Shown here in pieces: positions 11,219 to 64,000 of a stretch of DNA of 64,000 nt. Below the pieces are notes generated by a model. The model was not told the origin of the DNA. It did not search any database and saw only the letters and a program-made list of their open reading frames with translations. Positions within the stretch are counted from its first letter, which is position 1. The number at the start of each line of letters is the position of its first letter. Origin of the DNA: Hyaloraphidium curvatum SAG 235-1 (Eukaryota > Fungi > Monoblepharomycota); NCBI GenBank assembly GCA_025558095.1, contig JAIVFI010000020.1:645541-709540 (forward strand). Reading direction: 5' to 3'. Made by a program: the position numbers and the translations under genes.

Positions 11219-11513
11219 AATTTCTTGGGTTCTTCGTATTGTCTGTTCACCAGAACACCGCGCGGCTCGCAGCAGCTGTCGTGCAATGGAGGAAGCAACT
11301 TGCATGATGGATGCCAGAGTTGGAAGAGCACTAGGCTCCACTTCAACACTGCAGGCAGGAGTGCCGCCCGTCCTCCGCACACGTCAGCGGCCATCGTGGA
11401 AGGCGTGGGGCATTTTGGGGATCGCGCGAGGCCCGTTCTGCCGCAGGCGGCGGCTGGGGGGACAGGGAGAGAGCCATTCCAACCGCCAGAAACCCGAGCT
11501 CCGCCCGACTCCG

Positions 11514-13169
11514 ATGGCGGGAATGCTTGCGGACATTCTCTCCCCGCTGAAGCGGTCCCGCGCCGGGCGGCCGCCGCCCGTCGCCGCCGCGCGGGAACCG
11601 CCGTCCCCGCGCGTCGCCCCCGAACCCGCGCCCCTCCCCACGCCGTCGTCCCCGGACCCGCCCGCAAACGCGGTGCAGCCGGCCGCCCGCGAGAGGCCGT
11701 GGCCGCCTCCGCCGCCGATGGCCCCGCCCGGCGAGTACCCGCTGAATCCCAGCCCCGCCCAGGTGGCAGAGCTCATCGAGTATGGCAAGGTGAGGCCTGC
11801 CGGTGGGAGCGGGGGGCGCAATTGAATCGGGATCGCGCCGGCAGGTGCGGCGAAAGATGTACAAGGACGTGAAGCTCCTCGGGAGCGGCGCCGAAGCCAC
11901 GGTCAAGCAAGCCGTGGTCCGGGAGACGGGCCAGATCGTGGCGCTCAAAACCATGCCGAAGCCGGAGTTGATGCCCGCAGGGGGCAAACTGGGCGCTAAA
12001 GCGGCCTCGGCGGAGTCCGTGCGGGTCAGGGAGGCGTTCGAGAGGGACATTCGAAAGCGTTACGTCGCGATGAAGAGACTAGGAAATCATCCGAGGATTC
12101 CAACGTGAGGCTGTTGAGCGCCTCGCGGATGACGCCCATGCCGACGTGCAAATTCGCAGATACCACGAGCTCTTCGAGGTGACCGACAAGTTCTACCTGA
12201 TCCTGGACGTCGCACCGGGTGGCAATCTGGGTCAATACCTCCGACGGCAGGGCGGAATCATCGAGGACGAGCAGCTCGCAGCGCGCATTGCGTCGTACAT
12301 ACTGGAAGGCCTGGTCTTTGTGCACTCCCGCGGGGTCATCCACCGCGACCTGAAGCCCACCAACATCCTCCTCGCCGATGACCGGGTCGAAACGCTCTTC
12401 CTCTCGGACTTTTCCAACGCATACGTGGATCCGGCTCTCTACGGGACGGACATGACGGGGCAGCTGCTCACCCCGATGTCGCCTGTGACCCAGTCGTCAG
12501 ACGACTCCAGCGAGGTCATGAACAAGGCCTTTGCCAAAACGGTTACGGGAACGCCGTTCTACCTTGCCCCGGAGATCGTGATGGCGCAGCCCTACACCAA
12601 CTCGGTGGACATGTGGTCCGCAGGCTGCATCATCTACGAGGTGGGGGAGGTTTCAGGGGCGGCTCCCGCTCCTCTGTGGTAGACTGATGGAAACGTTTCC
12701 CCACATCCAGATCCTGTTCGGCCGCACCCCCTTCGCCACCGCGGCAAGATCAATGACGGAACTCTTCAACTGCATCGGTTCGGCGCGGATCAACTACCCG
12801 ACCGAGGACCGCGAGTACGGCCTGTCCCAGCAGGCGCTCTCGTTCCTCACCCGCCTCCTCGTGCGCGACCCCGCGGGGAGGATGACGGCCGCCGAGGCGA
12901 TGCGGCATCCGTGGATCGCGGGGGTGCTGCAGAAAGGACCTGCCGGTTCCTTGGAGAGGGAGCAGAAGGCAGCGGGGCTGGCGCCGGTCGCGGCACCGAT
13001 GCAGCTGAGTGTTTCTCCGGCCCTGAGGCCGACCAAGCTTGCGGATCCGGAAGCGGAGACATCTGCTCCAGTTGCTGAGAGGAGGTTGTCTGGCGTTGAA
13101 GTCATGTGGAGCATGGGCGAGCTGGTGCCGATGCTGCCGACTCTGCAGGCCCCGCCGAGCTTCCCGTGA
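11514..13169 (+). CDS. CAMK-like Ser/Thr protein kinase with atypical motifs
   Basis: LGSGAEATVK, VALK, HRDLKPTN, DFS, GTPFYLAPE, DMWSAG; 3 introns; Pro-rich N-terminus. Confidence 0.88.
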
Positions 13170-13299
13170 CAGCTGCATCCCTGGCCTGGACATGTATATA
13201 ACTGAACTGCAATCTTCCTTTGCGAAATTTGAGAGAAAAGAGTAGTTTGCCAAAGTTGGTTACAGGAAAAAGACTGTACAAGCCTCCCGGCCGGGGCCA

Positions 13300-16083
13300 T
13301 CACTCGACCTTGATCCGCACCTCGTCCTCCTCGTCCTTGATCACGACCACCTCCCGCTCCCGCTTCGCCATCTTCCTCTCCCTCTCCTTTTTCTCCGCCT
13401 TGACCGCCCGCTCGAACGCCCTCCTCTCCTCCTCCAGCTCCCTCTCCCTTTCCCGCAGCGCCCTCCTCGCCTCGGCATGCTGCCTCGCCAGCCTCAGCAC
13501 CTCGGCATCCAGCTGCTCCCTCTCCCTCGCCAGCGCCACCGCCGACCCCGCCCCTGGCCCGTGCAAGCCCGCCGCGGCGTGCACCATCCTCTCCGCCTCT
13601 GCGCGGCGCTCCTCCAGCTCCGCGCGGTCCCCGTCCAGGGCGGAATGCGCGGCATCCAGCGCCGCCCGCTCGTCCGAGAACCGCCGGCGCTCGAGGTCCA
13701 GGCTGCGCGCCCAGCGCTCGTGCTCGGCCCGCATGGCCGCGAGCTCCAGCTTCGCGGCCGCAAGCTCCGCCTTCGTGCCGGTCAGCTCGGCCCGGCCACG
13801 CTCGAGCTCGGCTTCCCGCTCGGCGTCGCGGGTGAGGAGCTGCGCGATGAGGGGGGCGATGTCGCTTGCGGGTGCCCGGGCGGGGGTGGGCGGACGCGGC
13901 TCGGGCGGGGGTGTGGGCGAACGCCGGCGCTTCCGCGCCTCCGAAACGCGCGCGGCGAGCGGGAGGTCCTCCGAGTCCAACGCCGGAAGCGGCCGAGACG
14001 GCTCCTCCCCGTCCTCCGTGTCCGACACCGCCGCCCTCCTCCTGAGCTTCCTCCGCGGCGCGGGCTCCGGCGTCCGATCCTCCCCGGCCTTCCTCCTCGG
14101 CGGCGTGGGCAGCTCGATCTCGATCTCGACCTCCAGCTCGTCCCGCAGCGGGAGCAGGCCGCGCCGGATGTCGTCCTCCCCCTTGACCCTGCGCTTCTTT
14201 CCGGCGGGGCGTTCCAGCGCGGCGGGCGGCGGCGGCGAACCGCCGTCGGAAACATCTTCTTTCTTGACCGCCGCCGCGGTGGGCTCCCCAGGGATCCGCA
14301 CGGCCGCTTCGTCCGCCGCCCGCCGCTCCTTCCGCCTGCGCTTCCTCTCCCCGCCGCCATCCACCAGCCTGATCGTCCCGCCTTGCACCACCACCCCCGC
14401 GCCGACCACGCGCTCGCCTTCCGCCGCGTCGGGAACGGGGAACGGCGGCATCGGCGAGGGCGACCTCGCTCTGCCCCTCGCGGGGAGCGAAGGCGGGCTC
14501 GGATCGCGCGGGGGGGTGCCGACCCACGACACCACGCTCGGCACGTCCGAGGGGAACCCCGTCGCGGCGTCCGATGCCGGCGACCCGGGGGTGGAGGGCA
14601 AGGGGGGGACGGGGATCGGGTCCGGTTGGGGGGGCCGCAGGCGGGGGTGCTTGGGCTGCAGGGGGAGCTTCGGCGGGGGAGGTGCGGGTGCGGGGGGAGG
14701 CGGTGCTGGAGCGGGTTGCGGGTCGGGGAGGCTGCCAGAGTGGGAGGAGAGGGGAGGGTGCCGGTACGTGCAGCGGTCTCCGAACGGGCAGTGGCCCTTT
14801 GCCCAGTAGCGACAGGCTTTCCAGCCGTGGGGGAGGGGCGCTGCGGCGGCCGGTGGCCCGGCCGGTTTGGCGGGAGGTGCAGGAGGGGGAGCGGCCGGTT
14901 TGCGGGGCGGCGCGGCGATGGGCAGGGGAACCACCTCCAGCTTGCGGTGCACCACCTCGATCTTGCGGGACGGGGAAGGTGCGAGAACCAAAGATTTGCG
15001 CGGCGGCGCCGGAAGCGGAGGCGGAGGCAGAGCGCGCGGCGCCGGATTCGGCTCCGGTCGCGCCCTGCCCCCCGCGGGCCCGTTCTTGAGCACCACCTCC
15101 CAGACCTTCAGGCTGCCGGGCCGCTGCGGCATCCCCGCGTGCCGCGCGGGCCGGATGCGTCCCCAGTCGCTGCCCCTTGGGCCCGTCGGGACGAGGTCCG
15201 GGAAGGCCGCGTCCACGGCGCGGCGGACGGCGTCTTTCCCGGCGTCCGACCCGAAGGCGAGCCAAATCTCCGTGTACGTGTCCTTCAGGTGCTCCGTGTT
15301 GGGTGCGGCGCGCACCGCAACGCTGAGCGGCACCGGCGACTCGGGCGTCGCCAGGAGCGGGTCGACGATGTCCCGCTGCACGAGGTCCAGCAGGGAGGGA
15401 AGCTCGCCCTGCCCGCCGTCCGACGACGGCCGCGTGACGCGCACCGTGAAGCCGAATCTCCACGTCTCCTCCTGCGCGTAAATCTCGGTCACGCTCCAGT
15501 ACCAGCCGTGCGCGTGGCCCCAGCGGCACACCTCCCGCGCCTGCGCCAGCCCGCGGACGACCACGAGCGCCGAGAGCGGCTGCACGGCCGGCGCGTCCCT
15601 GATCTGCAGCAGCTTCCTGTGCCGCGTGTCCGACATGAGCCGCAGCCGTTCGGCGTCGAGCGGCAGCAGCAGGCCGGGCTGCACGCCGCACAGCTCCGCG
15701 GCCCCGTCGGGCGCCAGCGTGTAGCGCACCGGCCTGACGGGCAGCGAGTCGAGCAGCACCTCCGCCGTGGGCGGCGGGTGCGGCGGCAGGCGGAAGCCTA
15801 TGAGCGGGAAGTCCGGCGCCTCCGTGTCCGCCAACACGGGGGGACTCGGCACCTCCCGCCTCCTCGAGTTGGGCCCGCTCGGTTCCCGCCTAACAGGTCC
15901 CCTCGCAGCTCCATTCCTGAACGGTTCCCTGGACGGTCCCGCGGCGAACGGCGGCCCCGCGCGCGGCGGCCCGGCCGGCGGTTTCGCCCGTCCCGCGGGC
16001 CGCGGCACCTCGACCGGCCCGCCGCCGCGCAGCTCAACCCACGGCCGCGCGGGCGGCGGCGGCGGGAGCGGCGGCGGCGGCAT
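13300..16083 (-). CDS. Pro-rich CCCH zinc-finger protein with C-terminal coiled coil
   Basis: CRYWAKGHCPFGDRCTYRH (C-x7-C-x5-C-x3-H); basic NLS-like clusters; E/R-rich heptads; long intronless ORF. Confidence 0.75.
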   Translation of the reverse strand: MPPPPLPPPPPARPWVELRGGGPVEVPRPAGRAKPPAGPPRAGPPFAAGPSREPFRNGAARGPVRREPSGPNSRRREVPSPPVLADTEAPDFPLIGFRLPPHPPPTAEVLLDSLPVRPVRYTLAPDGAAELCGVQPGLLLPLDAERLRLMSDTRHRKLLQIRDAPAVQPLSALVVVRGLAQAREVCRWGHAHGWYWSVTEIYAQEETWRFGFTVRVTRPSSDGGQGELPSLLDLVQRDIVDPLLATPESPVPLSVAVRAAPNTEHLKDTYTEIWLAFGSDAGKDAVRRAVDAAFPDLVPTGPRGSDWGRIRPARHAGMPQRPGSLKVWEVVLKNGPAGGRARPEPNPAPRALPPPPLPAPPRKSLVLAPSPSRKIEVVHRKLEVVPLPIAAPPRKPAAPPPAPPAKPAGPPAAAAPLPHGWKACRYWAKGHCPFGDRCTYRHPPLSSHSGSLPDPQPAPAPPPPAPAPPPPKLPLQPKHPRLRPPQPDPIPVPPLPSTPGSPASDAATGFPSDVPSVVSWVGTPPRDPSPPSLPARGRARSPSPMPPFPVPDAAEGERVVGAGVVVQGGTIRLVDGGGERKRRRKERRAADEAAVRIPGEPTAAAVKKEDVSDGGSPPPPAALERPAGKKRRVKGEDDIRRGLLPLRDELEVEIEIELPTPPRRKAGEDRTPEPAPRRKLRRRAAVSDTEDGEEPSRPLPALDSEDLPLAARVSEARKRRRSPTPPPEPRPPTPARAPASDIAPLIAQLLTRDAEREAELERGRAELTGTKAELAAAKLELAAMRAEHERWARSLDLERRRFSDERAALDAAHSALDGDRAELEERRAEAERMVHAAAGLHGPGAGSAVALAREREQLDAEVLRLARQHAEARRALRERERELEEERRAFERAVKAEKKERERKMAKREREVVVIKDEEDEVRIKVE

Positions 16084-17956: not shown

Positions 17957-20218
17957 TCATCCCACCGGAAACTCCTTCCACCAGGGAAAGAATATGACCG
18001 TGACCAGGAACCACACCGGGCACGCGATGGCGAGCGACCACGCCATGTAGCCGAAGAAGCTCGGCACGTGGAGCTTGTTCTGGATGGCGATGTTGCGCAC
18101 GAGGAAGTTGGGCGCGTTGCCGATGTACGTGCTGCGAAGGAAGGGATGCGGTGAGCGGCACGTGTGGTGCGTGCGTGGCAAGCGGCCCACTTGGCGCCCA
18201 TGAACACGGCGCCGGCCGTGATGGCCTGCAGGTAGATAGACTTGGTCGTCATGAGCTCCTGCGGGTTTCCGCCGGCGACGTTGAAGAAGAGCAGGTACGT
18301 CGGCGAGTTGTCGAGGAAGCTGGACAGGCCGCCCGTCACCCAGAAGTACTTGGCCGGGGTGTCCACGGCGGTGATGATGAACCCAAGCGGGCCCTGCACG
18401 CCCTCGTCGAACATGAGTAGGATGGGGACGAGGCAGAAGAAGATGCCGATGAAGAGCACGGCGACCTCCGTGAATGGTGCCCAGGTGAAGTTGTTGTCGC
18501 GGTGCACCTTCTTGGGCGTGAAGAGGAAGTACGAGGCCAGGCCGATGCCGACGAAGATGAGGTCCCGGCCGAGGGCAAAGTACGACCAGAAGATCGAGTC
18601 CGAGGGGGCGGCGGGGTTGGTCATGACCGTGAAGCCCGCGTCGGGGTACGCCTTGACAAGGAAGCCCGATGCAACGACGAGCGCTTCGTGGACGCGGCGT
18701 CAGCTAGCTTGTCGATCAGGGGTATCCTTTCGGAGGCACCCACCGACGACCAAACCGATCCCCGCGATGTTGATGAACCCGCTGATCCTGAACTTGTCCC
18801 CCGCCGACAGCCCCGGCTTGAGCGCCATCCCCACCCGCACCATCATCCGCAGCTTGTGCCATCCCTCGACGTACGCCATGGACGGTTTGCGCTCCGGCTC
18901 GCCGTGGAACTGCACCTGCGTCGCGGCCGTCGCGGCCGTCGCAACGCTGGCGACGGTGTCCTTGCGCACCGCGCTGCGGAGGCGCGCCCAGCCTTTGGGC
19001 TCCGGGGCGGTTGCGGCCTGCGCGCTTGCGGCCAAGACGTTGCCGGCGTCCTCCGACGTTGCGACAGCAGAGGGCCCGTTCGTCTCGGCTCCGACCAAGA
19101 TGCCCCGCGCTTCGGGCGCGGTGCTGTCGGTTCCAAGCTGAGCAGCTTCGCCGGCAACCTCAGCCTCGGGCGCGACTGTCGGTGGCTCGAGCGACTGCGG
19201 CGCCGCGGCGTCGGGAGCGACCCTCTCCCCGTCGCCGTTGGCCTTGAAGTCCCCCTCGACTCCCGCGGCCGTGGGGCCCGTCTGGCTCCTGGACGACGCC
19301 TTCCCCATCTCCACGTCGCCCCGATCGACAAACGCCACCGACGCCTTCCTCGGCAGGTTGTACGTGAGCACCGATCCCGTCCTCGGAGGCCCCACGGGCA
19401 CCGACATGGGCTGGTCGGCGCCGAACACCTCGCTCACGGCGGTCGCGAAGGTCTTTAGCCGCGTGGGCGCGCGCGGCGTGCTGGTCACGCTGACGGCGTC
19501 CGAGTCCCTCCGTCGGCGGGTCTTTGACCTGCGGCTCATCTCCATGTTGTAGAGCACCGTGTCGAGGATCAGGTAGATGAGGAGGAGGGTGGCGACGGCA
19601 AAGAGCATGTGGAAGATGAGGTTGGTCAAGGGCCAGAAAAAGTCGATGCCCTTGAGGAAGCCCAGGTACACGGGCGGGTCGCCGATGGGGGTGAGCACGC
19701 CGCCGACGTTGGAGACGATGAAGATGAAGAAGACGATGGTGTGCACGCGGTGGGTCCGCCGCGCGAGGGAGCGCAGCACGGGGCGGATCAGAATCATGCT
19801 GGTGCCGGTGGTGCCGATGATGGAGGCGAAGATGGCGCCGATTAGGAGGGTGAGCACGTTCGTCATGGGCGTTCCGTTGCCGGCGCCCTCGATGACCACG
19901 CCGCCGGCGGTCACGTAGAGGGCGAAGATTAGGGTCGTGAACGGGATGTACTCGAGAATGACGGTATGGAGGACCTCGTAGAGCATTAGCAGGCCTCCGA
20001 ACTGCACCGCGAACCTGCGGGAGCGCAAGAGATAAGAACCGCAACTCCGAGCCCGTCACGGGCACCCACGGTATGAGAAACGCCAGCGCACACACGAGCA
20101 CGAAGGCCCACATCCACTTCTCCCACGTGTGCGGGATCACCAGCGGGCACACGGCGATGCAGAGCAGCAGCACGACGAACGGTATCCCGTAGGGCAGCGT
20201 CACGGGCACGGGGGCCAT
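17957..20218 (-). CDS. Bacterial-type sodium:proton antiporter / IT-superfamily transporter (CitMHS_2-like) with a long hydrophilic insertion
   Basis: EYIPF, ASIIGTTGTSMILIRP, SNVGGVLTPIGDPPVYLGFLKGIDFFW, WAPFTEVAVLFIGIF, YFWVTGGLSSFLDNSPTY, TYIGNAPNF, PSFFGYM; 3 introns. Confidence 0.88.
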
Positions 20219-20751: not shown

Positions 20752-22146
20752 TCACTTGCCCTCCTGCACGGTGGTCGCCGGCGACTCGGCCTCCTCCTTG
20801 GCCGCCGCCTTGCCGGGGATCGGGAACGGCAGCGGGGCGCCGATCATCAGCGCGTTCATGTTGCTGTTGAGCTGCGCCTGCATTGCCGCCTTGTCGAGGT
20901 CGGTCATGCCCTCGGCTGTGCGGAGGAACTCGGAGTAGCGCTGCCGGGTGCGCGGTCAGCGGGCAGGCGGGCGCGGCCACGGCGCGGCGGCCCACCTTCT
21001 CCATCACCTCGAGCACCTTCTCCTGCGCGCGGCTGGGGATCACCGAGCCGCAGTTGTCGCACCTCCGGGCCTCGCCCTTGAGGGGCTCGCGGCACCAGAA
21101 GCACACCTGCACGATGGATTCCTTCTTGCGGTAGAACAGGCCGATGAACTTGATCATGAGGAAGACGACGATGGCGATGAGGAAGAAGTTGACGATGGAC
21201 TGCGGAGGGGGATCGGAGGCGGGGCGGGTGGTCGGAGGGGGCCGAGGAGGGGGCGAAAGGGGCATGCGACGGAAGCGGGACACCGTCAGGACCTCGTCCG
21301 GGGTCCGCCGTTCCCCGCACCCACGTTGATGAAGCTACCCCACGCGAGCGTGATGGCCTGGTCCGCGGTCGCCTGCTGCGGCGTCGGGTAGCTCATGTTG
21401 CCCGACAGCCCGGCGCGCATGACGGCGTTGTAGGCCGCCAGGTCCTTGTTCCCCATCAGCCCGATGATCGGGGAGATCATGTCGTCTACGAGCGAGGTGA
21501 CGATGGCCGTGAAGGCGTTGCCGATGATGATGCCCACGGCCAGGTCGACGACGTTGCCGCGGGAGATGAAGGCGAAGAAGTCCTGCGCAAACTCGGACAT
21601 GCCGCGGAGGGTGTCCATCGCCACGTCGTCCAGGTCGTCGAAGCTGTCGACCTTGGTGAACACGTTCGTGGCCTTCTGCACGGTCTGCTTGGTCGAATCG
21701 ACGACGTCTTTCGGGGAGGGGGACCGGGTCAGCGCGCCCATCCGCGGCCATCACGGGGCGGACCACCCACGGAGGGCATCGTCCGGCACGAAATCCTCGA
21801 TCACGACCTTCTCGGGCGCCTTGGGCGACTGCAGCGTGCTGGCGTGCGCGTCGTGGGCGGCGATGAGCTCGGGGTGGAACATGTCCGACGCCAGGCCGTA
21901 GGCCGCGGGTTTGGCCGGCGCGGCGGCGGCGGCGGACGACGAGGCGGCGGTGCCCGCGTCCGAGATCGGGCTGTCGCCGGCGCCGGCGGCCGCGGGCGCC
22001 GCCGATGCGGAGGCCGTCCCTGGCGTCGGCGCGGCCGACGCCGGGAACAGCGCCGGCTTGCCGGTCTTCGGGTCGAGGATCACCCGCCCGGCATCGTCGA
22101 AGCGGTACTCGAAGCCCGCGGGGGGCGGCGGCAGCTCGGCGTCCAT
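20752..22146 (-). CDS. mscL: Large-conductance mechanosensitive channel MscL homolog 1 (N-extension, C-terminal CxxC..CxxC)
   Basis: [40 protein letters not shown] (S1+TM1); WGSFIN|[17 protein letters not shown] (TM2); CFWC..CDNC; 3 introns. Confidence 0.92.
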
Positions 22147-24016: not shown

Positions 24017-25424
24017 ATGGCGGGCGAACCCGAGCTGCCGCCGCCGCCTGCGGGCTTCGAGTACCGCTTCGACGCGGCGGGCAACGTGCTCCTCGACGAG
24101 AAGACCGGGAAGCCGGCGCTGTTCGCGGTCGGCGAGGGCGGCACGGTTGCCGCGGCGTCCGCGCCATCGCCGGCCGCCGCGCCCGCCGCGCCCGATGCCG
24201 CCGCCGCCGCCGCGTCGGCCGCCGAGGTCGCCGCGCATCCCGGCGGCGTCGGCGCGCCCGGCGCCGCGGGCGACCTCGCCGCCATGTTCGCCGCACAGTC
24301 CGACGCCGACAACGCAAAGTCGGGCGCCGCCGAGCTGACCGCCGACCCCAACGACGTCAAGGCGATTCACTTTGTGCCCGACACCGCGCTGCGTGGGTTC
24401 CGCACGCCATTGCGCCTGCCGGCGGTGCGGCTGACCCCGTCCCCCGATCCCCCCCCCACCAGACGTCGTCGACACCACAAAGGGCACGGTCAACAAGACC
24501 GTCGACGCCGTGCAGGACATCTTCGACGACCCCACCGACGCCGCCCAGGACGCCCTGCGGAACATGTCCGACTTTGCCCAGGACTTTTTCAAGTTCATCT
24601 CGCGCGGCAACGTGATCGACCTGGCCGTCGGCATCATCATCGGCAACGCCTTCACCGCCATCGTGACCTCGCTCGTGGACGACATGATATCGCCGATCCT
24701 GGGGCTGATGGGGAACAAGGACCTGGCGGCCTACAACGCCGTCATGCGGCCCGGGCTGTCGGGGAACACCTCGTACCCGACCCCGGCGCAGGCAAAGGCG
24801 GACCAGGCCATCACGCTCGCATGGGGCAACTTCATCAACGTGGGTTGACGTCCCCGGGGGGGCGAATTCGGTCCCGAAGACCGCGGCTGACCCGTTCCCT
24901 CGCCGTCCCGTCTCCTCCCCCCGCCGTCTTCCGTCTCCTCGACCTCCCCGCACCTCCTCCTTTGTCCTCCCCCACCCAGTCGATCATCAACTTCTTCCTC
25001 ATCGCCATCGTCGTCTTCCTCATGATCAAGTTCATCGGCCTCTTCTACCGCAAGAAGGAGTCCATCGTCCAGGTGTGCTGGTGGTGCCGCGAGCCGCTCA
25101 AGGGCGACGCCCGTCGGTGCGACAACTGCGGCTCGGTGATCCCCAGCCGCGCGCAGGAAAAGGTCATGGAGGTCATGGAGAAGGTGGGACCGCCCGTGGC
25201 ATGCCGGTGCGGGGCAAGCTGACGCCCCGCAGCGCTACTCGGAGCACATCTCCAGCGCCGAGGGCATGACCGACCTCGACAAGGCCGCGCTGCAGGCCCA
25301 GCTCAACAGCAACATGAACGCGCTCATGATCGGCGCCCCGCTGCCGTTCCCGATCCCGGGCGGGAAGAAGCTCGAGACGCAGAAGACGGCGGCGACGGCG
25401 GCGGGCGTGGCGCCGGCCAAGTGA
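24017..25424 (+). CDS. mscL: MscL homolog 2, inverted paralog of homolog 1
   Basis: [33 protein letters not shown]; same 3 intron positions; CWWC..CDNC tail. Confidence 0.92.
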
Positions 25425-41490: not shown

Positions 41491-41698
41491 GGTTCGGCCG
41501 ACTGGCGTCGAGTTGTCGGAAAGAGAGCCGGCGGTCGCACTGATGCGCGGTTCGATGGGGCTCCTGTCCCCGAGGGGAAAACCGGAACTTCAAAGGCCGG
41601 ATCGAACACCGCGCGAAACACGAGCAGGAATGTTGTACACGCAGCGAAACATCAGCACCCGCGGCGGCAGCCGCTGTCTATCTACTTCTTCACCACGC

Positions 41699-43746
41699 CT
41701 AAACGTTGCGGAGCTGCTCTTCCACCTGAGCGGCCTCCTTCTTGAGCTCCTCCTCCGCCATCTCGGGGAAAGCCTTGCCGGAGTGGAGGCCTGCCATAGA
41801 TGCCCGCCGCGTCAGACCCCGACCCGGTCCGATCAGCATCGGGCGCGCACGCACCTTCGTCCATCAGCAGGGGGTCGTCGCCGCCTAGCTCTTCGAGGGT
41901 CTTGCCCTTGGTTTCCGGGACGAGGTACGTGAAGACGCCGCCCAAGGCCATGCACGCGGTGAAGATCCAGAGAAGGTTGGGCATCCACGCGTTCTTGCCG
42001 CCGATGTTGGCGAGCAGCGAGAAGCACTGCGCGGCGAGGATGGCGCCAAGCTTGCCCGAGGCCGCCGAGATGCCGTGGCAGGTGGAGCGCACGCGGGTGG
42101 GGAAGCACTCGGCGGGGATGATGAAGGTCGTCGAGTTGGCTGTACGACGGGGAGCGAGACGTCAGCAAGCGCACGAGGAGGAGGCCGGCAGCCAACCCAC
42201 GTCCAAAGTTGAAGAAGAACTGCGCGAACGCGTACACCATCACGAACGCCCACGTGGCGTTGGCCTTCATCTGGTAGTACGCCCCCGCGAGGATCGCAAA
42301 GCACACGACGAGCATCCCGAATCCCATGTACTGGATCGGCTTGCGGCCCCAGCGGTCGACGAATGCCACGGTGAACCAGTACCCGGGCACGTTGCCGGCG
42401 AGCGCGATGATGCAAGAGCCGACGGCGCGGGACCACACGTCGTTGAAGGGCGTCGACGAGTCGGCGAAGCCGATTGCCGAGAGCACGACCGAGGTGTTGA
42501 GGTTGGTGCCGTAGAAACCAATGTCGAGCAGGAACCAGGTCATGGAGGTGCCGAGCAGGGTCATCCAGTTCTGGCGGATCGAGAGGTACTCGCGCAGCTC
42601 GCCAAAGTACTTGTACTGCGGGCGCCGGCGGTAGTCAACCTTCTCCTCAACGATGACCGACATGCGGCGTCCGCCTTGCTGGACCGTGACCTCTTTGCCG
42701 GCATCCGCGCTCTCGCCGAGGAAGCGCTTGGCGTCGTCGGCGGCGGTCTTCTCGTCGCCGAGCACGTCGGCGGAGAAGCGCGGGGTCTCGGGGATGGTGA
42801 GCCGGAAGTAGATGGCGGCCGAGCAGGGGACGATGCCGAAGGCGGCGAGGATGCGCCAGCAAACGTCCATGTAGGCCAGGTTCTCGTTGATGTTGTTCTT
42901 TGCTGCTGCGAGGGTGATGACGGCGACGATGGAACCGAGGAGAATTCCGAAGCCCTGCATGGCGAACACGGTGGCGATCATGGCGCCACGGCGCTGCACC
43001 GAGGCAAACTCCGAGGTGATGACTGCCGAGACCGGGTAGTCGCCGCCGACGCCGACGCCGAGGACGAAGCGCCACCAGGCGAGGATGACGAGGAACGCGG
43101 TAAAGCCGCCCGAGGCGGTGGTGCCGACCATGGCCGTGCACAGGGCACCGAGGACGAGGATCATGAGCTCGACGCCGTAGACCTTCTTGCGGCCGAGCAC
43201 GTCGCCGAGCATGCCGAAGCCGAGCTGGCCGACGAGGTTGCCGTACGACGAGGCGGCCTTGACGAAGCCGTCGGCGACGCTCGACAGGGCGCCGCCGGAC
43301 GAGGGGCCGAGGTACGAGTAGGCGATCATCGGCACCTGGGGGACATGGGATGCGCGATCAGACCCTCGTAGGGCCGAATCGCATCGCACGGGGGCCGCCC
43401 ACCATCAAGCCGATGACGAAGTTGTCGTACGAGTCCGTCAGAAAGCTGTTCAGGGAGGTGGCGCCGTCAGCGGTGGCTCAGGCGCCGGTCCGGCCAACCC
43501 ACCCCGTGCCCGCGACGACGATGGCGCGAATGTGGGCCTTGGTAAACACGGCCTGGTCGAGTTCCTGCATGCAGGGGGTCGGCGGGGCGCGCAGCGGTGC
43601 CAGAAAGCGGTCCCCACCTTGAAGGCCTCCCTCACGCCGACGGCGTCCTGCAGCTTCTCACCTTCGAGCGGCTGCGGCACCACCGGCGCCGCGGGCGCGG
43701 CGGCGGCCTTGGGGATGTTCATCTGCATGGCGGGCGGGGCGGCCAT
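41699..43746 (-). CDS. PHO84: MFS phosphate:H+ symporter, copy 1
   Basis: FLTDSYDNF, GDVLGRKKVYG, GVGGDYPVSA, RRGAMIATVFAMQG, IPETPRF, PGYWF, GRKPIQ, RSTCHGISAASGK; 5 introns. Confidence 0.95.
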
Positions 43747-48810: not shown

Positions 48811-50862
48811 ATGGCCGCACCCGCCGTTACGGTCACGGTTTCCGAGCCCGCCGCGCCGGAGCTGCCGCCGCACGCGCGGCTGGAGGGCGAGAAGCTGGAG
48901 GACGCCGTCGGCGTGCGCGATGCCTTCAAGGTGGGCCGCCGGCCACCGCCTCGCCGGCCGCTCTGACCCGCGCGGCGCGATCAGGAACTCGACAAGGCGA
49001 CGTTCACGAAGGCCCACGTCCGCGCCGTGGTCGTGGCGGGCACGGGGTGGGTCGGCCGGCCCCGGTGGCCGAACCGCCGCTGACGGCGCCACCTCCCTGA
49101 ACAGCTTTCTGACGGACTCGTACGACAACTTTGTCATCGGCTTGATGGTGGGCGAGCTGCCCGGAGCGCGATTCGGGCCCGCAGGGTGCTGATCCCGCAT
49201 CCCCGATGCGCAGGTGCCCATGATCGCCTATTCGTACCTCGGCCCCTCGTCCGGCGGCGCCCTGTCGAGCGTCGCCGACGGCTTCGTCAAGGCCGCCTCG
49301 TCGTACGGCAACCTCGTCGGCCAGCTCGGCTTCGGCATGCTCGGCGACGTGCTCGGCAGGAAAAAGGTCTACGGCGTCGAGCTCATGATCCTCGTCCTCG
49401 GTGCCCTGTGCACGGCCATGGTCGGCACCACCGCCTCGGGCGGCTTTACCGCGTTCCTCGTCATCCTGGCCTGGTGGCGCTTCGTGCTCGGCGTCGGCGT
49501 CGGCGGCGACTACCCGGTCTCGGCAGTCATCACCTCGGAGTTTGCCTCGGTGCAGCGCCGTGGCGCCATGATCGCCACCGTCTTTGCCATGCAGGGCGTC
49601 GGCATCCTTCTCGGCTCCCTCGTTGCCGTCATTACTCTCGCCGCGGCCAAGAACAACATCAACGAGAACCTGGCCTACATGGACGTTTGCTGGCGCATCC
49701 TCGCCGCCTTCGGCATCGTCCCCTGCTCGGCCGCCATCTACTTCCGGCTCACCATCCCCGAGACCCCGCGCTTCTCCGCCGACGTGCTCGGCGACGAGAA
49801 GACCGCCGCGGACGACGCCAAGCGCTTCCTCGACGCCGGCGCCCCCACCGGCAAGGAGATCGAGGTCGAGGCCGGCGGCCGCCGCCGCTCGGTCGTCGTC
49901 GAGGAGCACGTGGACTACCGCCGGCGCCCGCAGTACAAGTACTTTGGCGAGCTGCGCGAGTACCTCTCGATCCGCCAGAACTGGATGACCCTGCTCGGCA
50001 CCTCCATGACCTGGTTCCTGCTCGACATTGGTTTCTACGGCACCAACCTCAACACCTCGGTCGTGCTCTCGGCAATCGGCTTCGCCGACGCGTCGACGCC
50101 CTTCAACGACGTGTGGTCCCGCGCCGTCGGCTCTTGCATCATCGCGCTCGCCGGCAACGTGCCCGGGTACTGGTTCACCGTGGCATTCGTCGACCGCTGG
50201 GGCCGCAAGCCGATCCAGTACATGGGATTCGGGATGCTCGTCGTGTGCTTTGCGATCCTCGCGGGGGCGTACTACCAGATGAAGGCCAACGCGACGTGGG
50301 CGTTCGTGATGGTGTACGCGTTCGCGCAGTTCTTCTTCAACTTTGGACGTGGGTTGGCTGCCGGCCTCCTCCTCGTTCGCCTGCTGACATCCCCCCCTCG
50401 GACAGCCAACTCGACGACCTTCATCATCCCCGCCGAGTGCTTCCCCACCCGCGTGCGCTCCACCTGCCACGGCATCTCGGCGGCCTCGGGCAAGCTTGGC
50501 GCCATCCTCGCCGCGCAGTGCTTCTCGCTGCTCGCCAACATCGGCGGCAAGAACGCCTGGATGCCCAACCTGCTGTGGATCTTCACCGCGTGCATGGCGC
50601 TCGGGGGGGCGTTCACGTACCTGGTGCCCGAGACCAAGGGCAAGACGCTGGAGGAGCTGGGCGGGGACGACCCGCTGCTGCTCGACGAGGGTGGGTTCCG
50701 CCTAGGATGGCACAGGAAGGCACGGGCTGACAGATCCACCCCGCAGGGATCCACTCGGGCAAGGCGTTCCCGTCGATGGCCGACGAGGAGCTCAAGAAGG
50801 AGGTCGGCCGCGCGGAGGAGCAGCTCCGCACGGTCGAGGCGGACAAGGTCGCGGATGTGTAG
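48811..50862 (+). CDS. PHO84: MFS phosphate:H+ symporter, copy 2 (inverted paralog)
   Basis: Same motifs and intron positions as copy 1; core nearly identical at nucleotide level. Confidence 0.95.
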
Positions 50863-50994: not shown

Positions 50995-51210
50995 CTAGGC
51001 TTTTTGACCGACGTCGACGCCGGCCACCGGGCGTTCCCTCTGGATCCGCTCCAGCATCATCCTCGTCCTCGGGTCCGCCATCCCCGCGGTCCACCCCGCC
51101 CGTCCTCCCCCGGCGGCCCCGGGGTACCAGCTCCCCGCGACCTCGTGCACGAGCCCGTCCAGGTGCGCCGACATGTTGGCCACCTGCACGCGGAGGACGT
51201 CCCGAGCGAG
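50995..51210 (-). pseudogene. Relic 3' end of a paralog of the 57396-58574 gene
   Basis: QVANMSAHLDGLVHEVAGSWYPGAAGGG..DPRTRMMLERIQRERP matches QIADMSAHLDGLVGEVARRWYPGAAGGG..DLRTRMMLERIQRERP. Confidence 0.85.
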
Positions 51211-57395: not shown

Positions 57396-58574
57396 ATGCG
57401 CGCGCCGCCGGGCTTGCTGACTTTCCTGCTCGGCGCCGCGTCGGCCGCGGGCCTGCTGCTGGCGCGGGAACGGCCGCCCGACACCCGCCGGGACGTCGGC
57501 CCCCTCGACCCCTCACTCGCCCTTCCGGACGGGCAGGACCCATCGCGTCCCACGCTGCCGGCAAACGCCTACTTTGTGCTCTACGCGCCGACATTTTCCG
57601 ACACCTGCGGGGGCTGCGTCGTCGTGCACGTCCTCTGCGACGCGCTCAACCGCCGCTTCGGCTCGGTCCACGCCCCGGCGGCCTACCTGCGGCCGTGGGA
57701 CGATTCCATATGGCCCGGCATGGCGTGGGCGACCAACCCGGCATACGCCACGCCGATTCTGCCGCCGTGGCTGCCGGCCGAGGACGGGATAGCCATCTAC
57801 ACCGACACCGTTCGCGGAAACCCGCTCAACGCGTCGAAGGTCGTGAGGTGGATGCTCTACTTCCGCGGGAGCCACGAGGCAGACACGAAGCCGCCGGACC
57901 GCGTGCCGGACGACCAGATCGTCGCGTGCCTGAAGCCGAGCTACTGCCGCGAGTTCCGGGCCCGGCCCACGCTACCGCTGTTCGTCTTCGACTTCCAGCT
58001 GGATTTCTACCTCAACCTGCCCACGGGGCAGCGCAACGGGACCCTCTACTTTGCGCACAAGAACCGCTACGAGGCCGGCGGGAAGCGGCTGCGGCGGGAA
58101 GCCCCGGACCTCTCGGGCAAGGACGTCCCCGTCGGGACCGGCAAGCGCGCCCGCCTGGAGCGCTTCGCCTCGGCGTCGGCGTTTGTCTCGTACGATCCGT
58201 CCACCCACCGATCCGTCGAGGCCGCGGTCGCCGGCTGCGCATCCGTGGTGGTGGCCCTGCCCGGGCTGGACAGGGAGGGCTACTTCGGGGCGTTTTCGTA
58301 CCCGAACGGGATCGGGTACGGGCTCGACGAAGCCGGATGGTCGGTGCAGTCGCGCGGGAAGCTGTTCCGCAGGGTCGGGGGGCAGATCGCAGACATGTCG
58401 GCGCACCTGGACGGGCTCGTTGGGGAGGTGGCGCGGCGGTGGTACCCCGGGGCCGCCGGCGGAGGGGACGCGGGGTCGACGACGGGGATGGAAGATCTGA
58501 GGACGAGGATGATGCTGGAGCGGATCCAGAGGGAGCGGCCGATGGCGGGCGGCGACGGGGGTGGGAAAGTGTAG
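57396..58574 (+). CDS. Intronless WavQ-like putative glycosyltransferase with N-terminal signal anchor
   Basis: YAPTFSDTCGGCVVVHVLCDALN, IYTDTVRGNPLNASKVVRWML, FVSYDP, AAVAGCASVVV, GIGYG; resemblance to bacterial WavQ-type proteins is from memory. Confidence 0.6.
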   Translation: MRAPPGLLTFLLGAASAAGLLLARERPPDTRRDVGPLDPSLALPDGQDPSRPTLPANAYFVLYAPTFSDTCGGCVVVHVLCDALNRRFGSVHAPAAYLRPWDDSIWPGMAWATNPAYATPILPPWLPAEDGIAIYTDTVRGNPLNASKVVRWMLYFRGSHEADTKPPDRVPDDQIVACLKPSYCREFRARPTLPLFVFDFQLDFYLNLPTGQRNGTLYFAHKNRYEAGGKRLRREAPDLSGKDVPVGTGKRARLERFASASAFVSYDPSTHRSVEAAVAGCASVVVALPGLDREGYFGAFSYPNGIGYGLDEAGWSVQSRGKLFRRVGGQIADMSAHLDGLVGEVARRWYPGAAGGGDAGSTTGMEDLRTRMMLERIQRERPMAGGDGGGKV

Positions 58575-58730: not shown

Positions 58731-59090
58731 TCACTCCTCGTCCCCCGCGTTGCGCGCCGCCTTCTCGTCCCTGGCCTCCCTCCTCTTCTCCTCCCTCTTC
58801 TCCTTCCCCTCGCCCTCGACCCTCCTCGCGGCGTTGGCGAACGCGGCGTCCATCGCCGCGGTCACGTCGGTCGCCTCGCCCTCGACGTCGAGCGGGCCGG
58901 CGGCGGTCTGCAGGTGCAGCGCAACGCGGTAGCTGCCGCCCTGCTTGTGGTGCGCCGAGGGGTGCTCGACGACCATGCGGGCCGATTCGACGGTGGGGTG
59001 CGACTCGGAGAGCTTCGCGAGGGACGCGGTGCCGAGCTCGGTGAGGTGCGCCGAGGAGGGCATGCCGCGGTAGGTCACGTCGAGGGACAT
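58731..59090 (-). CDS. hpf: HPF/RaiA (S30AE) ribosome-associated protein homolog, 119 aa
   Basis: MSLDVTYRGMPSSAHL..SLAKL..VESARMVVEHPSAHHKQGGSYRVALHL..DVTAAMDAAFANAARRV fits the beta-alpha-beta-beta-beta-alpha HPF pattern. Confidence 0.8.
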   Translation of the reverse strand: MSLDVTYRGMPSSAHLTELGTASLAKLSESHPTVESARMVVEHPSAHHKQGGSYRVALHLQTAAGPLDVEGEATDVTAAMDAAFANAARRVEGEGKEKREEKRREARDEKAARNAGDEE

Positions 59091-59431
59091 TACGGGCGGC
59101 TGTGGCGGGGAGCGGAAGGGCGGGAGATGGCGGCGGAGGGGGCGATGGGGTCCGGAGACGGTTTGTTTCGTGGCAGGGTGGCGCAAGCGGAGGAGTCAGG
59201 CCGGAACCCCCGTAGGAGGGACCCACGGATGGATGGCCGATCAGCGAGGCATATATGTAGGATGCTTCGCAAAGATGGATGGAAATGGGATTCACCTTAA
59301 TTGCCGCTTCTGCGGGTGGCGAGCAACCAGTTCGCGAGAGCACGTTCGGAGTGCCCGTGCTCTGCGCCGATTTTAGGTGAAGCCGGGCGTGAAACGATAT
59401 CAAACGGGAGATTTGCGTCGGACATCCTTCT

Positions 59432-61399
59432 ATGGGATCGGACTCGGGCGACGGCGAGGTGGAGGCGGGCCACGCGGTCTGGCTCTCGCCGGAGGGTCGA
59501 GGACGCACGGCGGCTGGGGAGTCGTCCGGTCCCTCCTGCCTTCCGCGGCCTACGGGGCCTGCGGGCGAAGCGATGGTCGCCTCTGATGGCCGCCGAACGC
59601 CAGAATGGGGCGCAATTGCGGCGGAGGCCGAGGCTTGGCGGCGCGGCGCTGCGCGGGGGGAAACGCCGGCGCCCGCGGAGTGGCCGACAGGGGACGGCGG
59701 CGAGGCGACTCCCTCGGCACCGGCGACGCCCCTGGCCGCGCGGACCGCCGAGGACGGCGACGAGGAGGTTCCCTCCGCTTGGGACCCGCCCGCGCCGGAT
59801 TTCCCGCCGCCGCCACGCGACCCCATGGGCGCGCCCCTCCCGGTGGCCGACCTGATGCTCGGCCTGGACTCCTTTTGGCAACGGCTGCACACCACTTTCC
59901 CCGTCGTGCACCGCGCATCCTTCGAGGCGGCCTTCACGCGCCCCGGCGGGCCGATGCCCGGGACACCTCTGTTTCCGCGAGGCGCCCCGCTGATGCTCCT
60001 GCACACGCTGGCCGGCTTCGGCGCCCTGTTCCTGGAAGAGGTGCCCAACGCAAAGCGCGCCGCCCTCGCCAAGGCGTGCTGCGAGCGCGCCAAGGTCCTG
60101 GCCCTGGCGACGTTCGACACCCTCCCGGCGCGCGACGACCTCGAGCTGGGCCTGGCGTGCTACTACCTTGTCGGGGTGGCGGTCGTGGCAGGGCAGCCCG
60201 CAGCCGCCGCTCCGCTCATACGCCGGACGGCCGAGACCGCTGAAGCCCTGTTCCGCGCACTCCCGCAAGGCCCGCCGCAGACGGCGGCGGCGTGGCTCTG
60301 GCGCGAGTGCGTGCTCCGCCTCCGGATCGGAACCGCGCACGCCGACATTGGCCAGGCACACCTCACGGGTCTGCCGGCGTTCGGGAACTACTTCTCCGGC
60401 GCCTGCCCGCTGCCCTCCCCGGAGCCGTACTTCGAGGCCCGCGACGGCGGGGCGGCCTTCTCGATGGCGCAACTGCTGTGGCTGGCGGGCGAGCCCGTCG
60501 TAGATTTCGGGCGCGACCCCTCCTCGGGTGAAGCCCTCGTCGGGTGCTCCGCCTCCCTGGCGCGCCATGCGCTCTCCACCTCTTCGTCAACTGCGCTGTA
60601 CCAGCTCGCTCAGCTCCTCCGGCACGCCGCGTGCGAGGCGCAGCACCGCGCGCCCGCCTACGAGCTGTCCGCCCGCACGTGGGACGTTTCCTTGGCACTG
60701 GACGCCGCCATAGGTGCCATGCCGGCCGACGTCCGCGGCCCCCTCTCCAAGGGAGACCCTGGACCGTTCCTGGACCACTGCACCGCGCACCACGGCGACT
60801 TCCCCCACGCCTCCGCCGCCCTGCAGTGCGTGGTCCTCTGCTTCGGCCTCGTCGTCTTTGCCTTTTCCGAGGCCGGGATGCCCGTCCAGGCCGTGCGGCG
60901 CTCCCTCGTGCTCGCCGGGCTGCTCTCCGGCCTCGCGAAGCGCGACCCCACCTTCGCCACCGCCTCCTTCGCCATCGCCGTGCCCGCCTACGCCGCCGGC
61001 CGCGCCGTACTCCGCTGCATCCGCGAACCCCCGGCCAGCTCGCGGCCCGAGGCGCTGTACCCCGCCGCGCGCGAGCTCTGCGCGGCGCTGGAGCTGCTGG
61101 CCGCGAGGATGGGGCTGCAGGTGCGCAGGGTGGCGGCGGTGTTTGCCGCCGAGATGGACGAGGCAGGGGTGCCGCCCGATGCGGGGTTCTTTGGGGAGCT
61201 GCTGGGGATCGAGGCGGGGACGCTTGCGTCGAGAGGCTTCTCGGGGGGGCTGAGGAGCGCGACCCTTTCCGCCGAGGAGGAGGCCGCTGAGGTCGAGGGG
61301 CCGATGGACGAGGCGGATGCGCCCGAGGGGAGAGCTTACAGCTTCATGGATCGCGTGGCGATGGCCCTGCGGGCGAGGCGAGCCCCGGTTGCGGGGTAA
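59432..61399 (+). CDS. Fungal-TF middle-homology-domain protein without a visible Zn cluster
   Basis: GLDSFWQRLHTTFPVVHRASF, LLHTLAGFGA, WRECVLR, CPLPSPEPYF; intronless; last gene before the telomere. Confidence 0.7.
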   Translation: MGSDSGDGEVEAGHAVWLSPEGRGRTAAGESSGPSCLPRPTGPAGEAMVASDGRRTPEWGAIAAEAEAWRRGAARGETPAPAEWPTGDGGEATPSAPATPLAARTAEDGDEEVPSAWDPPAPDFPPPPRDPMGAPLPVADLMLGLDSFWQRLHTTFPVVHRASFEAAFTRPGGPMPGTPLFPRGAPLMLLHTLAGFGALFLEEVPNAKRAALAKACCERAKVLALATFDTLPARDDLELGLACYYLVGVAVVAGQPAAAAPLIRRTAETAEALFRALPQGPPQTAAAWLWRECVLRLRIGTAHADIGQAHLTGLPAFGNYFSGACPLPSPEPYFEARDGGAAFSMAQLLWLAGEPVVDFGRDPSSGEALVGCSASLARHALSTSSSTALYQLAQLLRHAACEAQHRAPAYELSARTWDVSLALDAAIGAMPADVRGPLSKGDPGPFLDHCTAHHGDFPHASAALQCVVLCFGLVVFAFSEAGMPVQAVRRSLVLAGLLSGLAKRDPTFATASFAIAVPAYAAGRAVLRCIREPPASSRPEALYPAARELCAALELLAARMGLQVRRVAAVFAAEMDEAGVPPDAGFFGELLGIEAGTLASRGFSGGLRSATLSAEEEAAEVEGPMDEADAPEGRAYSFMDRVAMALRARRAPVAG

Positions 61400-61639
61400 T
61401 GCAGCCCGTATCTGTGATGCAGCGATTGTTCCAGTATACCTGGCCACCTCTCACGTTGTCGTCTCTGGATGTCGTCGCATTGGACCCACCAGGCCCTGCT
61501 GAGCCTCACCCAACGCCCCCCCGATGCTCCCCTGACGCTCCCCCGATGCTCTGCGATGCTCCTTGGAGCTCCAAAAGGCCCCTCAAGCATTGCCCTTTCC
61601 TCCCCAGTGCAGAGCAGCTGTTCCTGTGCTTCAAACTGG

Positions 61640-61712
61640 GCGTCGTCCCCGTCGTCCCCGTCGTCCCTGCCCGTCGTCCCTGCCCGCCGTCCCTGCCCGT
61701 CGTCCCTGCCCC
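61640..61712. repeat. Subtelomeric short tandem repeat (CGTCGTCCC / CCGTCGTCCCTGC)
   Basis: About six degenerate 9-13 bp units directly visible. Confidence 0.75.
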
Positions 61713-61914
61713 ACTGCCGCACAGCATCGCCGAGTTCGCCTTCACGCACACGATGTCGTCAAACTATGCTGGGGGCGCGCCGGATTGTTCACCAATCCTC
61801 AGCCAACATCAGGAAATCCTTCGAGTCCATCCACAGACATCAGGAAGCAGCTCGAGGCTCCCAGATGCTCGAGATGCTACCAGAATCCGAGAAGACAAAT
61901 CTGGTGACATACAG

Positions 61915-62098
61915 AGGTTAGGTTAGGTTAGGTTAGGTTAGTTTAGTTTAGTTAGGTTAGGTTAGGTTAGGTTAGGTTAGGTTAGGTTGGTTAGGTTAGG
62001 TTAGGTTAGGTTAGGTTAGGGTTAGTAGGGTAGGTTAGGTTAGGTTAGGTTGGTTAGGTTAGGTTAGGTTAGGTTAGGTTAGGTTAGGTTAGGTTAGG
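61915..62098 (+). repeat. Telomeric array (TTAGG)n
   Basis: ~35 pentamer units, G-rich strand running 5'->3' towards the end. Confidence 0.92.
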
Positions 62099-62100
62099 GG

Positions 62101-64000
62101 AGCGCGCGCTCTGCCTCCGAGCCGGTGGGGGGGGGAGAGAGGAAAACCGAACGAACCTAACCGAACCTAACCTAACCGAACCGAACCTAACCTAACCTAA
62201 CCTAACCGACCTAACGAACCTAACCTAACCGAACCTAACACCCTAACCTAACCTACCTAACCTAACCTAACCTAACCTAACTAACCTAACTAAACTAAAC
62301 TAACCTAACCTAACCTAACCTAACCTCTGTATGTCACCAGATTTGTCTTCTCGGATTCTGGTAGCATCTCGAGCATCTGGGGCCTCGAGCTGCTTCCTGA
62401 TGTCTGTGGATGGACTCGAAGGATTTCCTGATGTTGGCTGAGGATGGTGAACAATCCGGCGCGCCCCCAGCATAGTTTGACGACATCGTGTGCGTGAAGG
62501 CGAACTCGGCGATGCTGTGCGGCAGTGGGGCAGGGACGACGGGCAGGGACGGCGGGCAGGGACGACGGGCAGGGACGAGGGACGACGGGGACGACGCCCA
62601 GTTTGAAGCACAGGAACAGCTGCTCTGCACGGGGAGGAAAGGGCAATGCTTGAGGGGCCTTTTGGAGCTCCAAGGAGCATCGCAGAGCAGGGGAGCGTCA
62701 GGGGAGCAGGGGGGGCGGGGTGAGGCTCAGCAGGGCCTGGTGGGTCCAATGCGACGACATCCAGAGACGACAACGTGAGAGGTGGCCAGGTATACTGGAA
62801 CAATCGCTGCATCACAGATAGGGCTGCATTACCCCGCAACCGGGGCTCGCCTCGCCCGCAGGGCCATCGCCACGCGATCCATGAAGCTGTAGCTCTCCCC
62901 TCGGGCGCATCCGCCTCGTCCATGGCCCCTCGACCTCAGCGGCCTCCTCCTCGGCGGAAAGGGTCGCGCTCCTCAGCCCCCCCGAGAAGCCTCTCGACGC
63001 AAGCGTCCCCGCCTCGATCCCCAGCAGCTCCCCCAGAAACCCCGCATCGGGCGGCACCCCTGCCTCGTCCATCTCGGCGGCAAACACCGCCGACCCTGCG
63101 CACCTGCAGCCCCATCCTCGCGGCCAGCAGCTCCAGCGCCGCGCAGAGCTCGCGCGCGGGGGGTACAGCGCCTCGGGCCGCGAGCTGGCCGGGGGTTTCG
63201 CGGATGCAGCGGAGTACGGCGCGGCCGGCGGCGTAGGCGGGCACGGCGATGGCGAAGGAGGCGGTGGCGAAGGTGGGGTCGCGCTTCGCGAGGCCGGGAG
63301 AGCAGCCCGGCGAGCACGAGGGAGCGCCGCACGGCCGGACGGGCATCCCGGCCTCGGAAAAGGCAAAGACGACGAGGCCGAAGCAGAGGACCACGCACTG
63401 CAGGGCGGCGGAGCGTGGGGGAAGTCGCGTGGTGCGCGGTTTGCAGTGGTCCAGGAACGGTCAGGGTCTCCCTTGGAGAGGGGGCCGCGGACGTCGGCCG
63501 GCATGGCACCTATGGCGGCGTCCAGTGCCAAGGAAACGTCCCACGTGCGGGCGGACAGCTGTAGGCGGGGCGCGGTGCTGCGCCTCGCACGCGGCGTGCC
63601 GGAGGAGCTGAGCGAGCTGGTACAGCGCAGTTGACGAAGAGGTGGAGAGCGCATGGCGCGCCAGGGAGGCGGAGCACCCGCGGAGGCTTCACCCGAGGAG
63701 GGTCGCGCCCGAAATCTACGACGGGCTCGCCGCCAGCCACAGCAGTTGCGCCATCGAGAAGGCCGCCCCGCCGTCGCGGGCCTCGAAGTACGGCTCCGGG
63801 GAGGCAGCGGGCAGGCGCCGGAGAAGTAGTTCCCGAACGCCGCAGACCCGTGAGGTGTGCTGGCCAATTCGGCGTGCGCGGTTCCGATCCGGAGGCGGAG
63901 CACGCACTCGCGCCAGAGCCGACGCCGCCGTCTGCGGCGGGCCTTGAGGGAGTGCGCGGAGAACAGGGCTTCAAGCGGTCTCGGCGTCCGGCGTATGAGC
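62101..64000 (-). other. Fold-back: adapter-like spacer, (CCTAA)n and an indel-rich inverted copy of ~60220-61914; likely assembly artefact
   Basis: Mirror of the preceding sequence, including the GTTTAGTTTA telomere variants, with scattered 1-nt indels that break the ORF. Confidence 0.85.

Follow-up and report, generated by a model that had tools for sequence, protein, structure and literature searches.

In bacteria, proteins of the HPF/RaiA family shut off idle ribosomes; why should a gene for one stand beside a telomere of a fungus? Hyaloraphidium curvatum is a colourless, non-flagellated freshwater organism formerly classed as an alga. It is an early-branching fungus and belongs to Monoblepharomycota. 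We analysed the final 64 kb (the window) of its contig JAIVFI010000020.1 (709,540 nt; assembly GCA_025558095.1), where an initial annotation had read a short open reading frame as a horizontally acquired dormancy factor. A 2026 survey treats HPF as a universal prokaryotic hibernation module and describes the eukaryotic copies as plastid-derived (PMC13728122); for the eukaryotic cytosol, a review gives unrelated hibernation factors only (PMC11102965). Our literature searches, whose coverage is incomplete, turned up no non-plastid eukaryote, and no fungal or mitochondrial case, in which an HPF has been described.

The 119-aa reading frame is a real gene encoding a standalone HPF/RaiA domain. Its coding sequence (58731–59090, minus strand) runs from ATG 59090 to TGA 58731 as one intact coding exon, and the deposited gene model gives the identical product from the same ATG, so that the frame is intact and intronless as first described. 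The S30AE domain (58815–59090, minus strand) is defined by AF2 secondary structure and by a Pfam match over residues 4–92 that passes marginally (PF02482; 24.3 bits against a gathering cutoff of 23.7, E 5.5e-5), whereas the canonical HPF/YfiA equivalog TIGR00741, at 23.5 bits, did not reach its cutoff of 40.9. A full-library search returned 56 proteins (the query itself, four short repeat-protein matches and about 50 HPF-like proteins at 28–39% identity), and S30AE was matched by 50 of 51 aligned homologue rows. The AF2 model built from the homologue alignment reached pLDDT 94.5, with strands at residues 3–8, 34–42, 54–62 and 65–73 and helices at 14–30 and from 76 onward. E. coli HPF was its top Foldseek match (E 1.2e-7, rmsd 1.5 Å, TM-score 0.91 by target length), and all matches listed, the best 39, were HPF/RaiA/pY-type entries, including plastid pY (PSRP1). 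The profile search and the structure model that had been proposed as checks thus both support the S30AE fold and, with it, assignment to the family. No second HPF/RaiA copy occurs within the window, and an Rfam search gave no match.

Within the family, the closest resemblance is to a recently described group. The best PDB sequence match was 9t0z_9 (183 aa, E 6e-4; E 1e-38 with a subfamily profile), which we identify with Coxiella HPFcold (CBU_0020), a fusion of S30AE and cold-shock domains located in the 30S tRNA cleft in the work that cites 9t0z (bioRxiv 10.1101/2025.11.08.686982). Like HPFcold and standalone relatives named ‘HPF/RaiA family ribosome-associated protein’, the H. curvatum protein has a His-rich insertion in the β2–β3 loop (residues 44–54; 58929–58961, minus strand), an A-F-x-x-A-x-R motif in helix 2 and a long helix extension. 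Members of the HPFcold-like subfamily share the insertion and the motif, which E. coli HPF and RaiA lack, and the query matches subfamily positions P44, H47, H48, G51, D75, A83, F84, A87 and R89. It differs from HPFcold and these relatives in being a eukaryotic nuclear gene with an acidic tail, half the usual basic residues and 26–38% identity; a search for the cold-shock domain gave no CSD match and the frame ends at residue 119, which places the protein outside the HPFcold class itself, and many bacterial relatives in the subfamily are likewise standalone. With the canonical HPF-short, RaiA (YfiA) and HPF-long proteins of bacteria and phages it shares the fold (TM 0.6–0.9) and equivalents of Lys26 and Arg83, but it scores far below the TIGR00741 cutoff and has neither Lys80, Lys87 and Lys89 nor a dimerisation domain. 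The subfamily was also scanned by locus, with a single bacterial homologue as query. In one subfamily architecture (P0030), an additional N-terminal stretch of about 185 residues precedes the HPF and cold-shock-like parts, and another homologue (P0028) lies in a bacterial gene cluster with CBS-domain and β-CASP genes.

The phylogeny with bacterial HPFs that the initial annotation had called for gave part of an answer. In quick trees of about 117 columns, built without archaeal HPF, LrtA or PSRP1 and with subfamily rows partly picked by similarity to the query, the protein fell on the subfamily side of a branch with 99% SH-aLRT support, at the end of a long terminal branch (1.2–1.4); a basal placement joining it to the canonical HPFs was nevertheless not rejected (p-AU 0.42), and no donor was identified. 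The failure of these trees to single out a donor, the long branch, which fits old age, and the presence of the subfamily in Alphaproteobacteria (Azospirillum, Tistlia) would all be compatible with inheritance from the mitochondrial endosymbiont and loss in nearly all other eukaryotes. We regard such an origin as highly improbable: it would require very many losses, we found no eukaryotic relative, and the nearest row in both trees was P0004, from a cluster named Planctomycetota, though long-branch attraction may have drawn it there.

Searches for relatives point instead to bacteria. All relatives that have names or gene contexts are bacterial, most matches having no taxon label, and identity to identified relatives reaches at most about 38%, with no relative above this among 1.84 billion representatives. 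A word-index search for close relatives returned the query itself only; no close relative was found in metagenome contigs, by protein or by exact DNA, or among viral contigs, phages, plasmids and PHROGs, and the protein, word-index and metagenome searches yielded no orthologue in another eukaryote, which confines the gene, as far as these searches reach, to one species. A viral route for the transfer was considered and set aside, since the phage HPFs found are of the canonical type.

The composition of the gene, by contrast with its relatives, is that of its host. GC3 is 0.975 and the codon score of 0.45 bits per codon lies at the top of the range of nine host genes (0.21–0.45), which upholds the host-like GC bias first reported. 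Six of its ten Arg codons, including that of the conserved Arg89, are AGG, a codon that makes up 17% of Arg in host genes (38% in their last 30 codons) and 4% (14 of 342) in GC-rich bacterial homologues. G/C skew climbs from −0.32 over the first 100 nt to +0.60 over the last 100 nt, and a G-rich 3′ end (+0.22 to +0.56) was present in 11 of 11 host genes tested in the window and at another H. curvatum locus. These host signatures—GC3, AGG use and the G-rich 3′ end—therefore make an old horizontal transfer, not contamination, the most likely explanation; a transfer from a bacterium to the fungus is in our judgement very likely, and the gene most likely resides, intact and host-adapted, in the nuclear genome, as the claim of horizontal acquisition had supposed. 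More generally, the enrichment of AGG-encoded Arg in the final 30 codons of host genes could, together with their G-rich ends, serve as a marker of genome residence.

Upstream, neither a sigma-70 promoter nor a Shine-Dalgarno sequence was found, and the 482-nt divergent intergenic region contains a TATA-like AT-rich element (59251–59259, minus strand). A three-codon upstream reading frame (59253–59242, minus strand) starts within this element, 160 nt ahead of the ATG, and probably lies at or upstream of the transcription start. On the 3′ side, 156 nt away, a convergent 392-aa reading frame with an N-terminal hydrophobic helix (57396–58574, plus strand; context only) belongs to a host multigene family: its paralogues, 44–46% identical, lie on another contig of GCA_025558095.1, and so does a paralogue recorded at 49% identity that is a named H. 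curvatum protein. This immediate neighbour is uninterrupted, so the intron-rich flank described at first begins one gene further on, with an intron-containing amidohydrolase; a Zn2Cys6 gene and an MFS transporter are also near, intron-containing neighbours having been read exon by exon without joined spliced models. On the other side stands the last gene before the telomere (59573–61399, plus strand; context only), which encodes 608 aa and had been credited with a fungal transcription-factor domain, a label that was not confirmed, for the Fungal_trans-like stretch is a weak 24-residue match of 14.8 bits, below the cutoff of 23. No bacterial genes neighbour the HPF/RaiA gene.

Beyond this last gene, a telomere-type (TTAGG)n array of about 37 copies (61915–62098, plus strand) has its G-strand toward the contig end. 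Its start at 61915, 2.8 kb from the HPF/RaiA ATG, confirms the stated distance, and with the host-family gene alongside it supports a fungal nuclear subtelomere as the setting. The repeat unit is the 5-mer TTAGG, not TTAGGG; some units read TTTAG or TTGG instead. From about 62100 the contig continues as an indel-rich reverse-complement copy of 60214–62100 (95.8% identity; palindrome centre near 62110), most likely a long-read fold-back artefact, whose arms (60214–64000) do not extend to the HPF/RaiA gene. The deposited annotation assigns to the second arm a gene of 208 aa.

Could the gene itself be an artefact, bacterial DNA joined onto the end of a fungal contig? The gene is known from a single assembly, and because of the fold-back, coverage near the contig end may be thin. 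We hold such a join to be very unlikely all the same, given the host-type AGG use and strand skew, the want of a Shine-Dalgarno sequence and of bacterial neighbours, the host-family gene 156 nt off, and the lack of any relative above about 38% identity among the representatives searched.

Where would the product of such a transferred gene act? The initial annotation had pointed to an in-frame TTG at 59186, from which a minus-strand frame runs uninterrupted through ATG 59090 to TGA 58731, and had proposed that near-cognate initiation there adds a leader directing the protein to mitoribosomes. The TTG and its open frame (59091–59186, minus strand) exist, but the features held to be distinctive are at chance level: given the C-rich composition of these 96 nt, the probability of no stop is 0.73 and that of no D/E is 0.43, and of 13 further start codons in host genes, nine are preceded by an open in-frame extension of at least 35 codons. 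The leader peptide has nine Pro among its 32 residues (28%), with a longest Pro-free run of eight, five Arg and no acids. With a GC3 of 0.75, it has a codon score of −3.9, lower than in 99% of coding windows; two genuine N-termini of host proteins, however, reach values as low. Position −3 is C at the TTG and G at ATG 59090, and the latter coincides with the start of bacterial homologues.

The leader may, moreover, be removed by splicing. A candidate 127-nt 5′-UTR intron (59100–59226, minus strand) with a host-type donor, GTGGGT, would excise the TTG; its acceptor is the first downstream AG, 9 nt before the ATG, and the probability of no earlier AG is 0.03. The candidate is weak, being longer than the host introns seen (about 60–80 nt) and having a branch-like motif that lies 100 nt away from its acceptor. 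We rejected an upstream coding exon, as no in-frame ATG lies nearby ahead of the candidate donor at 59226. The open frame is most likely 5′ untranslated or intronic and not a presequence.

These features bear directly on a mitochondrial role, in which the protein would be imported through the TTG leader or an internal signal and would bind the bacterial-type mitoribosome. To our knowledge, the mitoribosome is the sole bacterial-type ribosome in this cell, which favours that role; so do the Arg content of the leader and its freedom from acids, one 11-residue window in it with a hydrophobic moment of 0.79, and the precedent of organelle targeting by plastid PSRP1. Yet the basic amphipathic N-terminal helix of 20–50 residues that marks a mitochondrial presequence was not found in this Pro-rich leader with its weak TTG context, and leader features at chance level leave targeting by this path unsupported; the codon use resembles non-coding sequence, the TTG may be intronic, and the mature protein is acidic and begins where bacterial homologues do. 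We accordingly judge a mitochondrial factor improbable and do not retain the claim of near-cognate initiation. The 119-aa protein has no transit peptide, signal peptide or hydrophobic N-terminus and, since it has no presequence, is predicted to be cytosolic; on these sequence features it probably stays in the cytoplasm. Translation from ATG 59090 without a presequence, an old transfer and a cytosolic 119-aa product are, taken jointly, very likely.

Does such a protein retain the means to bind a ribosome? Its charged C-terminal helix extension (residues 93–119; 58734–58814, minus strand) has nine K/R and ten D/E. The initial annotation had called it an added charged tail; it is charged, and unusually acidic (ten D/E against a homologue mean of 3.8), but it is not an addition, because R99 and R103 align with conserved subfamily positions, the first half being homologous to the subfamily helix extension, and because, at 27 residues past residue 92 (median 21 among 86 standalone homologues), it is matched or exceeded in length in 36% of them. 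As a result of the acidic tail, the pI of the protein is 5.7, near the 5th percentile of homologues.

The residues by which HPF contacts rRNA are Lys26, Lys80, Arg83, Lys87, Lys89 and Lys91, with Arg83, which contacts m4C1402, as the single essential arginine (bioRxiv 10.1101/2025.10.07.680626); in S. aureus HPF, binding was abolished only by mutating both helices, single-helix mutations being insufficient (PMC4889938). The H. curvatum protein keeps the equivalents of Lys26 and of Arg83, the latter as Arg89 (58824–58826, minus strand; of 80 subfamily rows, 78 have Arg there). The Lys23 equivalent is lost (S23) and Glu occupies the Lys91 position, while the Lys80, Lys87 and Lys89 positions are non-basic across the whole HPFcold-like subfamily. 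With thresholds for core and secondary columns set after inspection of the data, all five of the most conserved basic columns are kept, as in 50% of the 161 homologues compared, but only one of nine secondary basic columns (mean 5.7), a number as low in 1.2% of these homologues; nine similarly diverged homologues keep four to seven. Of 14 subfamily basic positions six are kept, against a mean of ten, and charge is reversed at E29 and E97. The RNA-binding face thus appears partly eroded and ribosome binding plausible, and the pattern of basic residues is equally compatible with weakened binding and with adaptation to another kind of ribosome.

The loss of eight of nine secondary basic residues would fit repurposing or decay: the transferred gene may be kept although its product is no longer a hibernation factor, the fold persisting as a module that carries a charged helix and binds RNA or protein weakly, or the gene may be a subtelomeric passenger, nearly neutral and slowly decaying. 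The acidic pI would agree with this, as would the match to only 12 of 21 conserved structural columns (bottom 2%), the long terminal branch, the occurrence in a single species and a subtelomere that holds duplicated and remnant genes; the frame, on the other hand, is intact, the codon bias strong and the core basic set complete despite the divergence. We give this account a real chance, though one well short of even.

A protein that still works like HPF, cytosolic and bound at the decoding centre of the small subunit, is a possibility that we favour only tentatively, repurposing or decay being almost as probable. It would engage small subunits that stand idle, at their conserved decoding centre, and would block the tRNA sites and protect rRNA in starved or resting cells; with no cold-shock domain, it would not bind or protect the anti-Shine-Dalgarno. 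Basic residues that lie at the periphery in the bacterial family are lost, and co-option by the fungus for hibernation of 80S ribosomes, with universal decoding-centre contacts kept and bacterium-specific ones shed, is a somewhat more doubtful step again. The fold, the retained core residues and the lack of targeting signals are observations; the localisation, binding and physiology that these steps invoke we infer. The HPF domain of archaeal AHA occupies the ribosome site of bacterial HPF with equivalent residues, so that the HPF fold could cross domains (PMC13728122). Fungi already possess the hibernation factors Stm1 and Lso2 (PMC11102965). Our literature search brought up no description of an 80S-bound HPF, and the only ribosome-bound member of the HPFcold-like subfamily that it found is the fused HPFcold, not a standalone protein. 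Nor need the target be the fungus’s own: the 70S ribosome is the natural target of the family and phages carry canonical HPF genes, which would suit an antibacterial or symbiont-control protein hitting bacterial ribosomes outside the fungal cytosol. Such a role seems most unlikely for a protein with no signal peptide or hydrophobic N-terminus, with less positive charge than bacterial homologues and with no known route into bacteria.

Among known systems, the nearest eukaryotic counterpart is plastid PSRP1/pY, likewise a nuclear-encoded HPF-family protein of the same fold. PSRP1 is of cyanobacterial endosymbiotic origin and has a transit peptide, whereas H. curvatum has no plastid and its protein no credible presequence; PSRP1 stood outside the tree. 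Archaeal AHA/HibA show that an HPF fold can occupy, on small subunits that are not bacterial, the site it uses in bacteria, and their terminal helix is likewise longer than that of E. coli HPF, but they form a separate CBS-fused clade (PMC13728122, PMC13454478). Stm1/SERBP1, Lso2/CCDC124, IFRD, MDF1/2, Dap1b and SNOR have the proposed role alone in common with the H. curvatum protein; according to reviews, these eukaryotic factors are unrelated in sequence and fold.

If binding to 80S ribosomes is true, this would be, as far as our searches reach, the first HPF on a eukaryotic cytosolic ribosome; the improbable mitochondrial role would make it the first on a mitoribosome. A protein of 119 residues makes both questions testable: can the HPF fold silence 80S ribosomes, and can mitochondria use an HPF? 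Because it is probably cytoplasmic, it could be used to test a bacterial switch on eukaryotic ribosomes, and, as a naturally occurring variant, it could help to show which basic residues are required by the fold. Should it bind no ribosome, the gene would be one more lineage-specific transfer in an aquatic fungus, from a group known for many: in aquatic fungi of early-diverging lineages, transfers confined to one species are frequent, according to a study that did not include H. curvatum (PMC11291939).

Elsewhere, the window contains genes of mainly prokaryotic families and several duplications. An inverted pair of MscL genes (PF01741, about 80 bits; 20812–22139, minus strand, and 24030–25361, plus strand) shares 75% DNA identity, and both are apparently split by introns; this large-conductance mechanosensitive channel belongs to a mainly prokaryotic family. 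Near the pair lies a CitMHS_2 transporter (PF16980, 218 bits; 18700–20055, minus strand), of a mainly bacterial family and a further candidate for transfer. An MFS transporter (PF00083), phosphate-transporter-like by appearance, occurs as an inverted duplication of 89% identity (41696–43700 and 48842–50841). Beside it, the stretch 51012–51187 is an inverted remnant of the convergent 57396–58574 gene, 7 kb away, and matches the 3′ end of that gene at 84% identity. That gene represents a family of about 390 aa with an N-terminal hydrophobic helix and at least three copies, the others lying at the second H. curvatum locus (L002; 8495–9676 and 10001–11164); searches assigned it to no database family and gave homologues in the H. 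curvatum genome alone, and the deposited model of the 57396–58574 gene spans 279 aa only. The family may resemble bacterial WavQ-like glycosyltransferases. At the same second locus, genes for a bacterial-type α-L-rhamnosidase (1460–4367), a hexapeptide-repeat protein (7072–7773) and an MmgE/PrpD protein (11231–13916) stand among uninterrupted glycosyltransferase-like reading frames.
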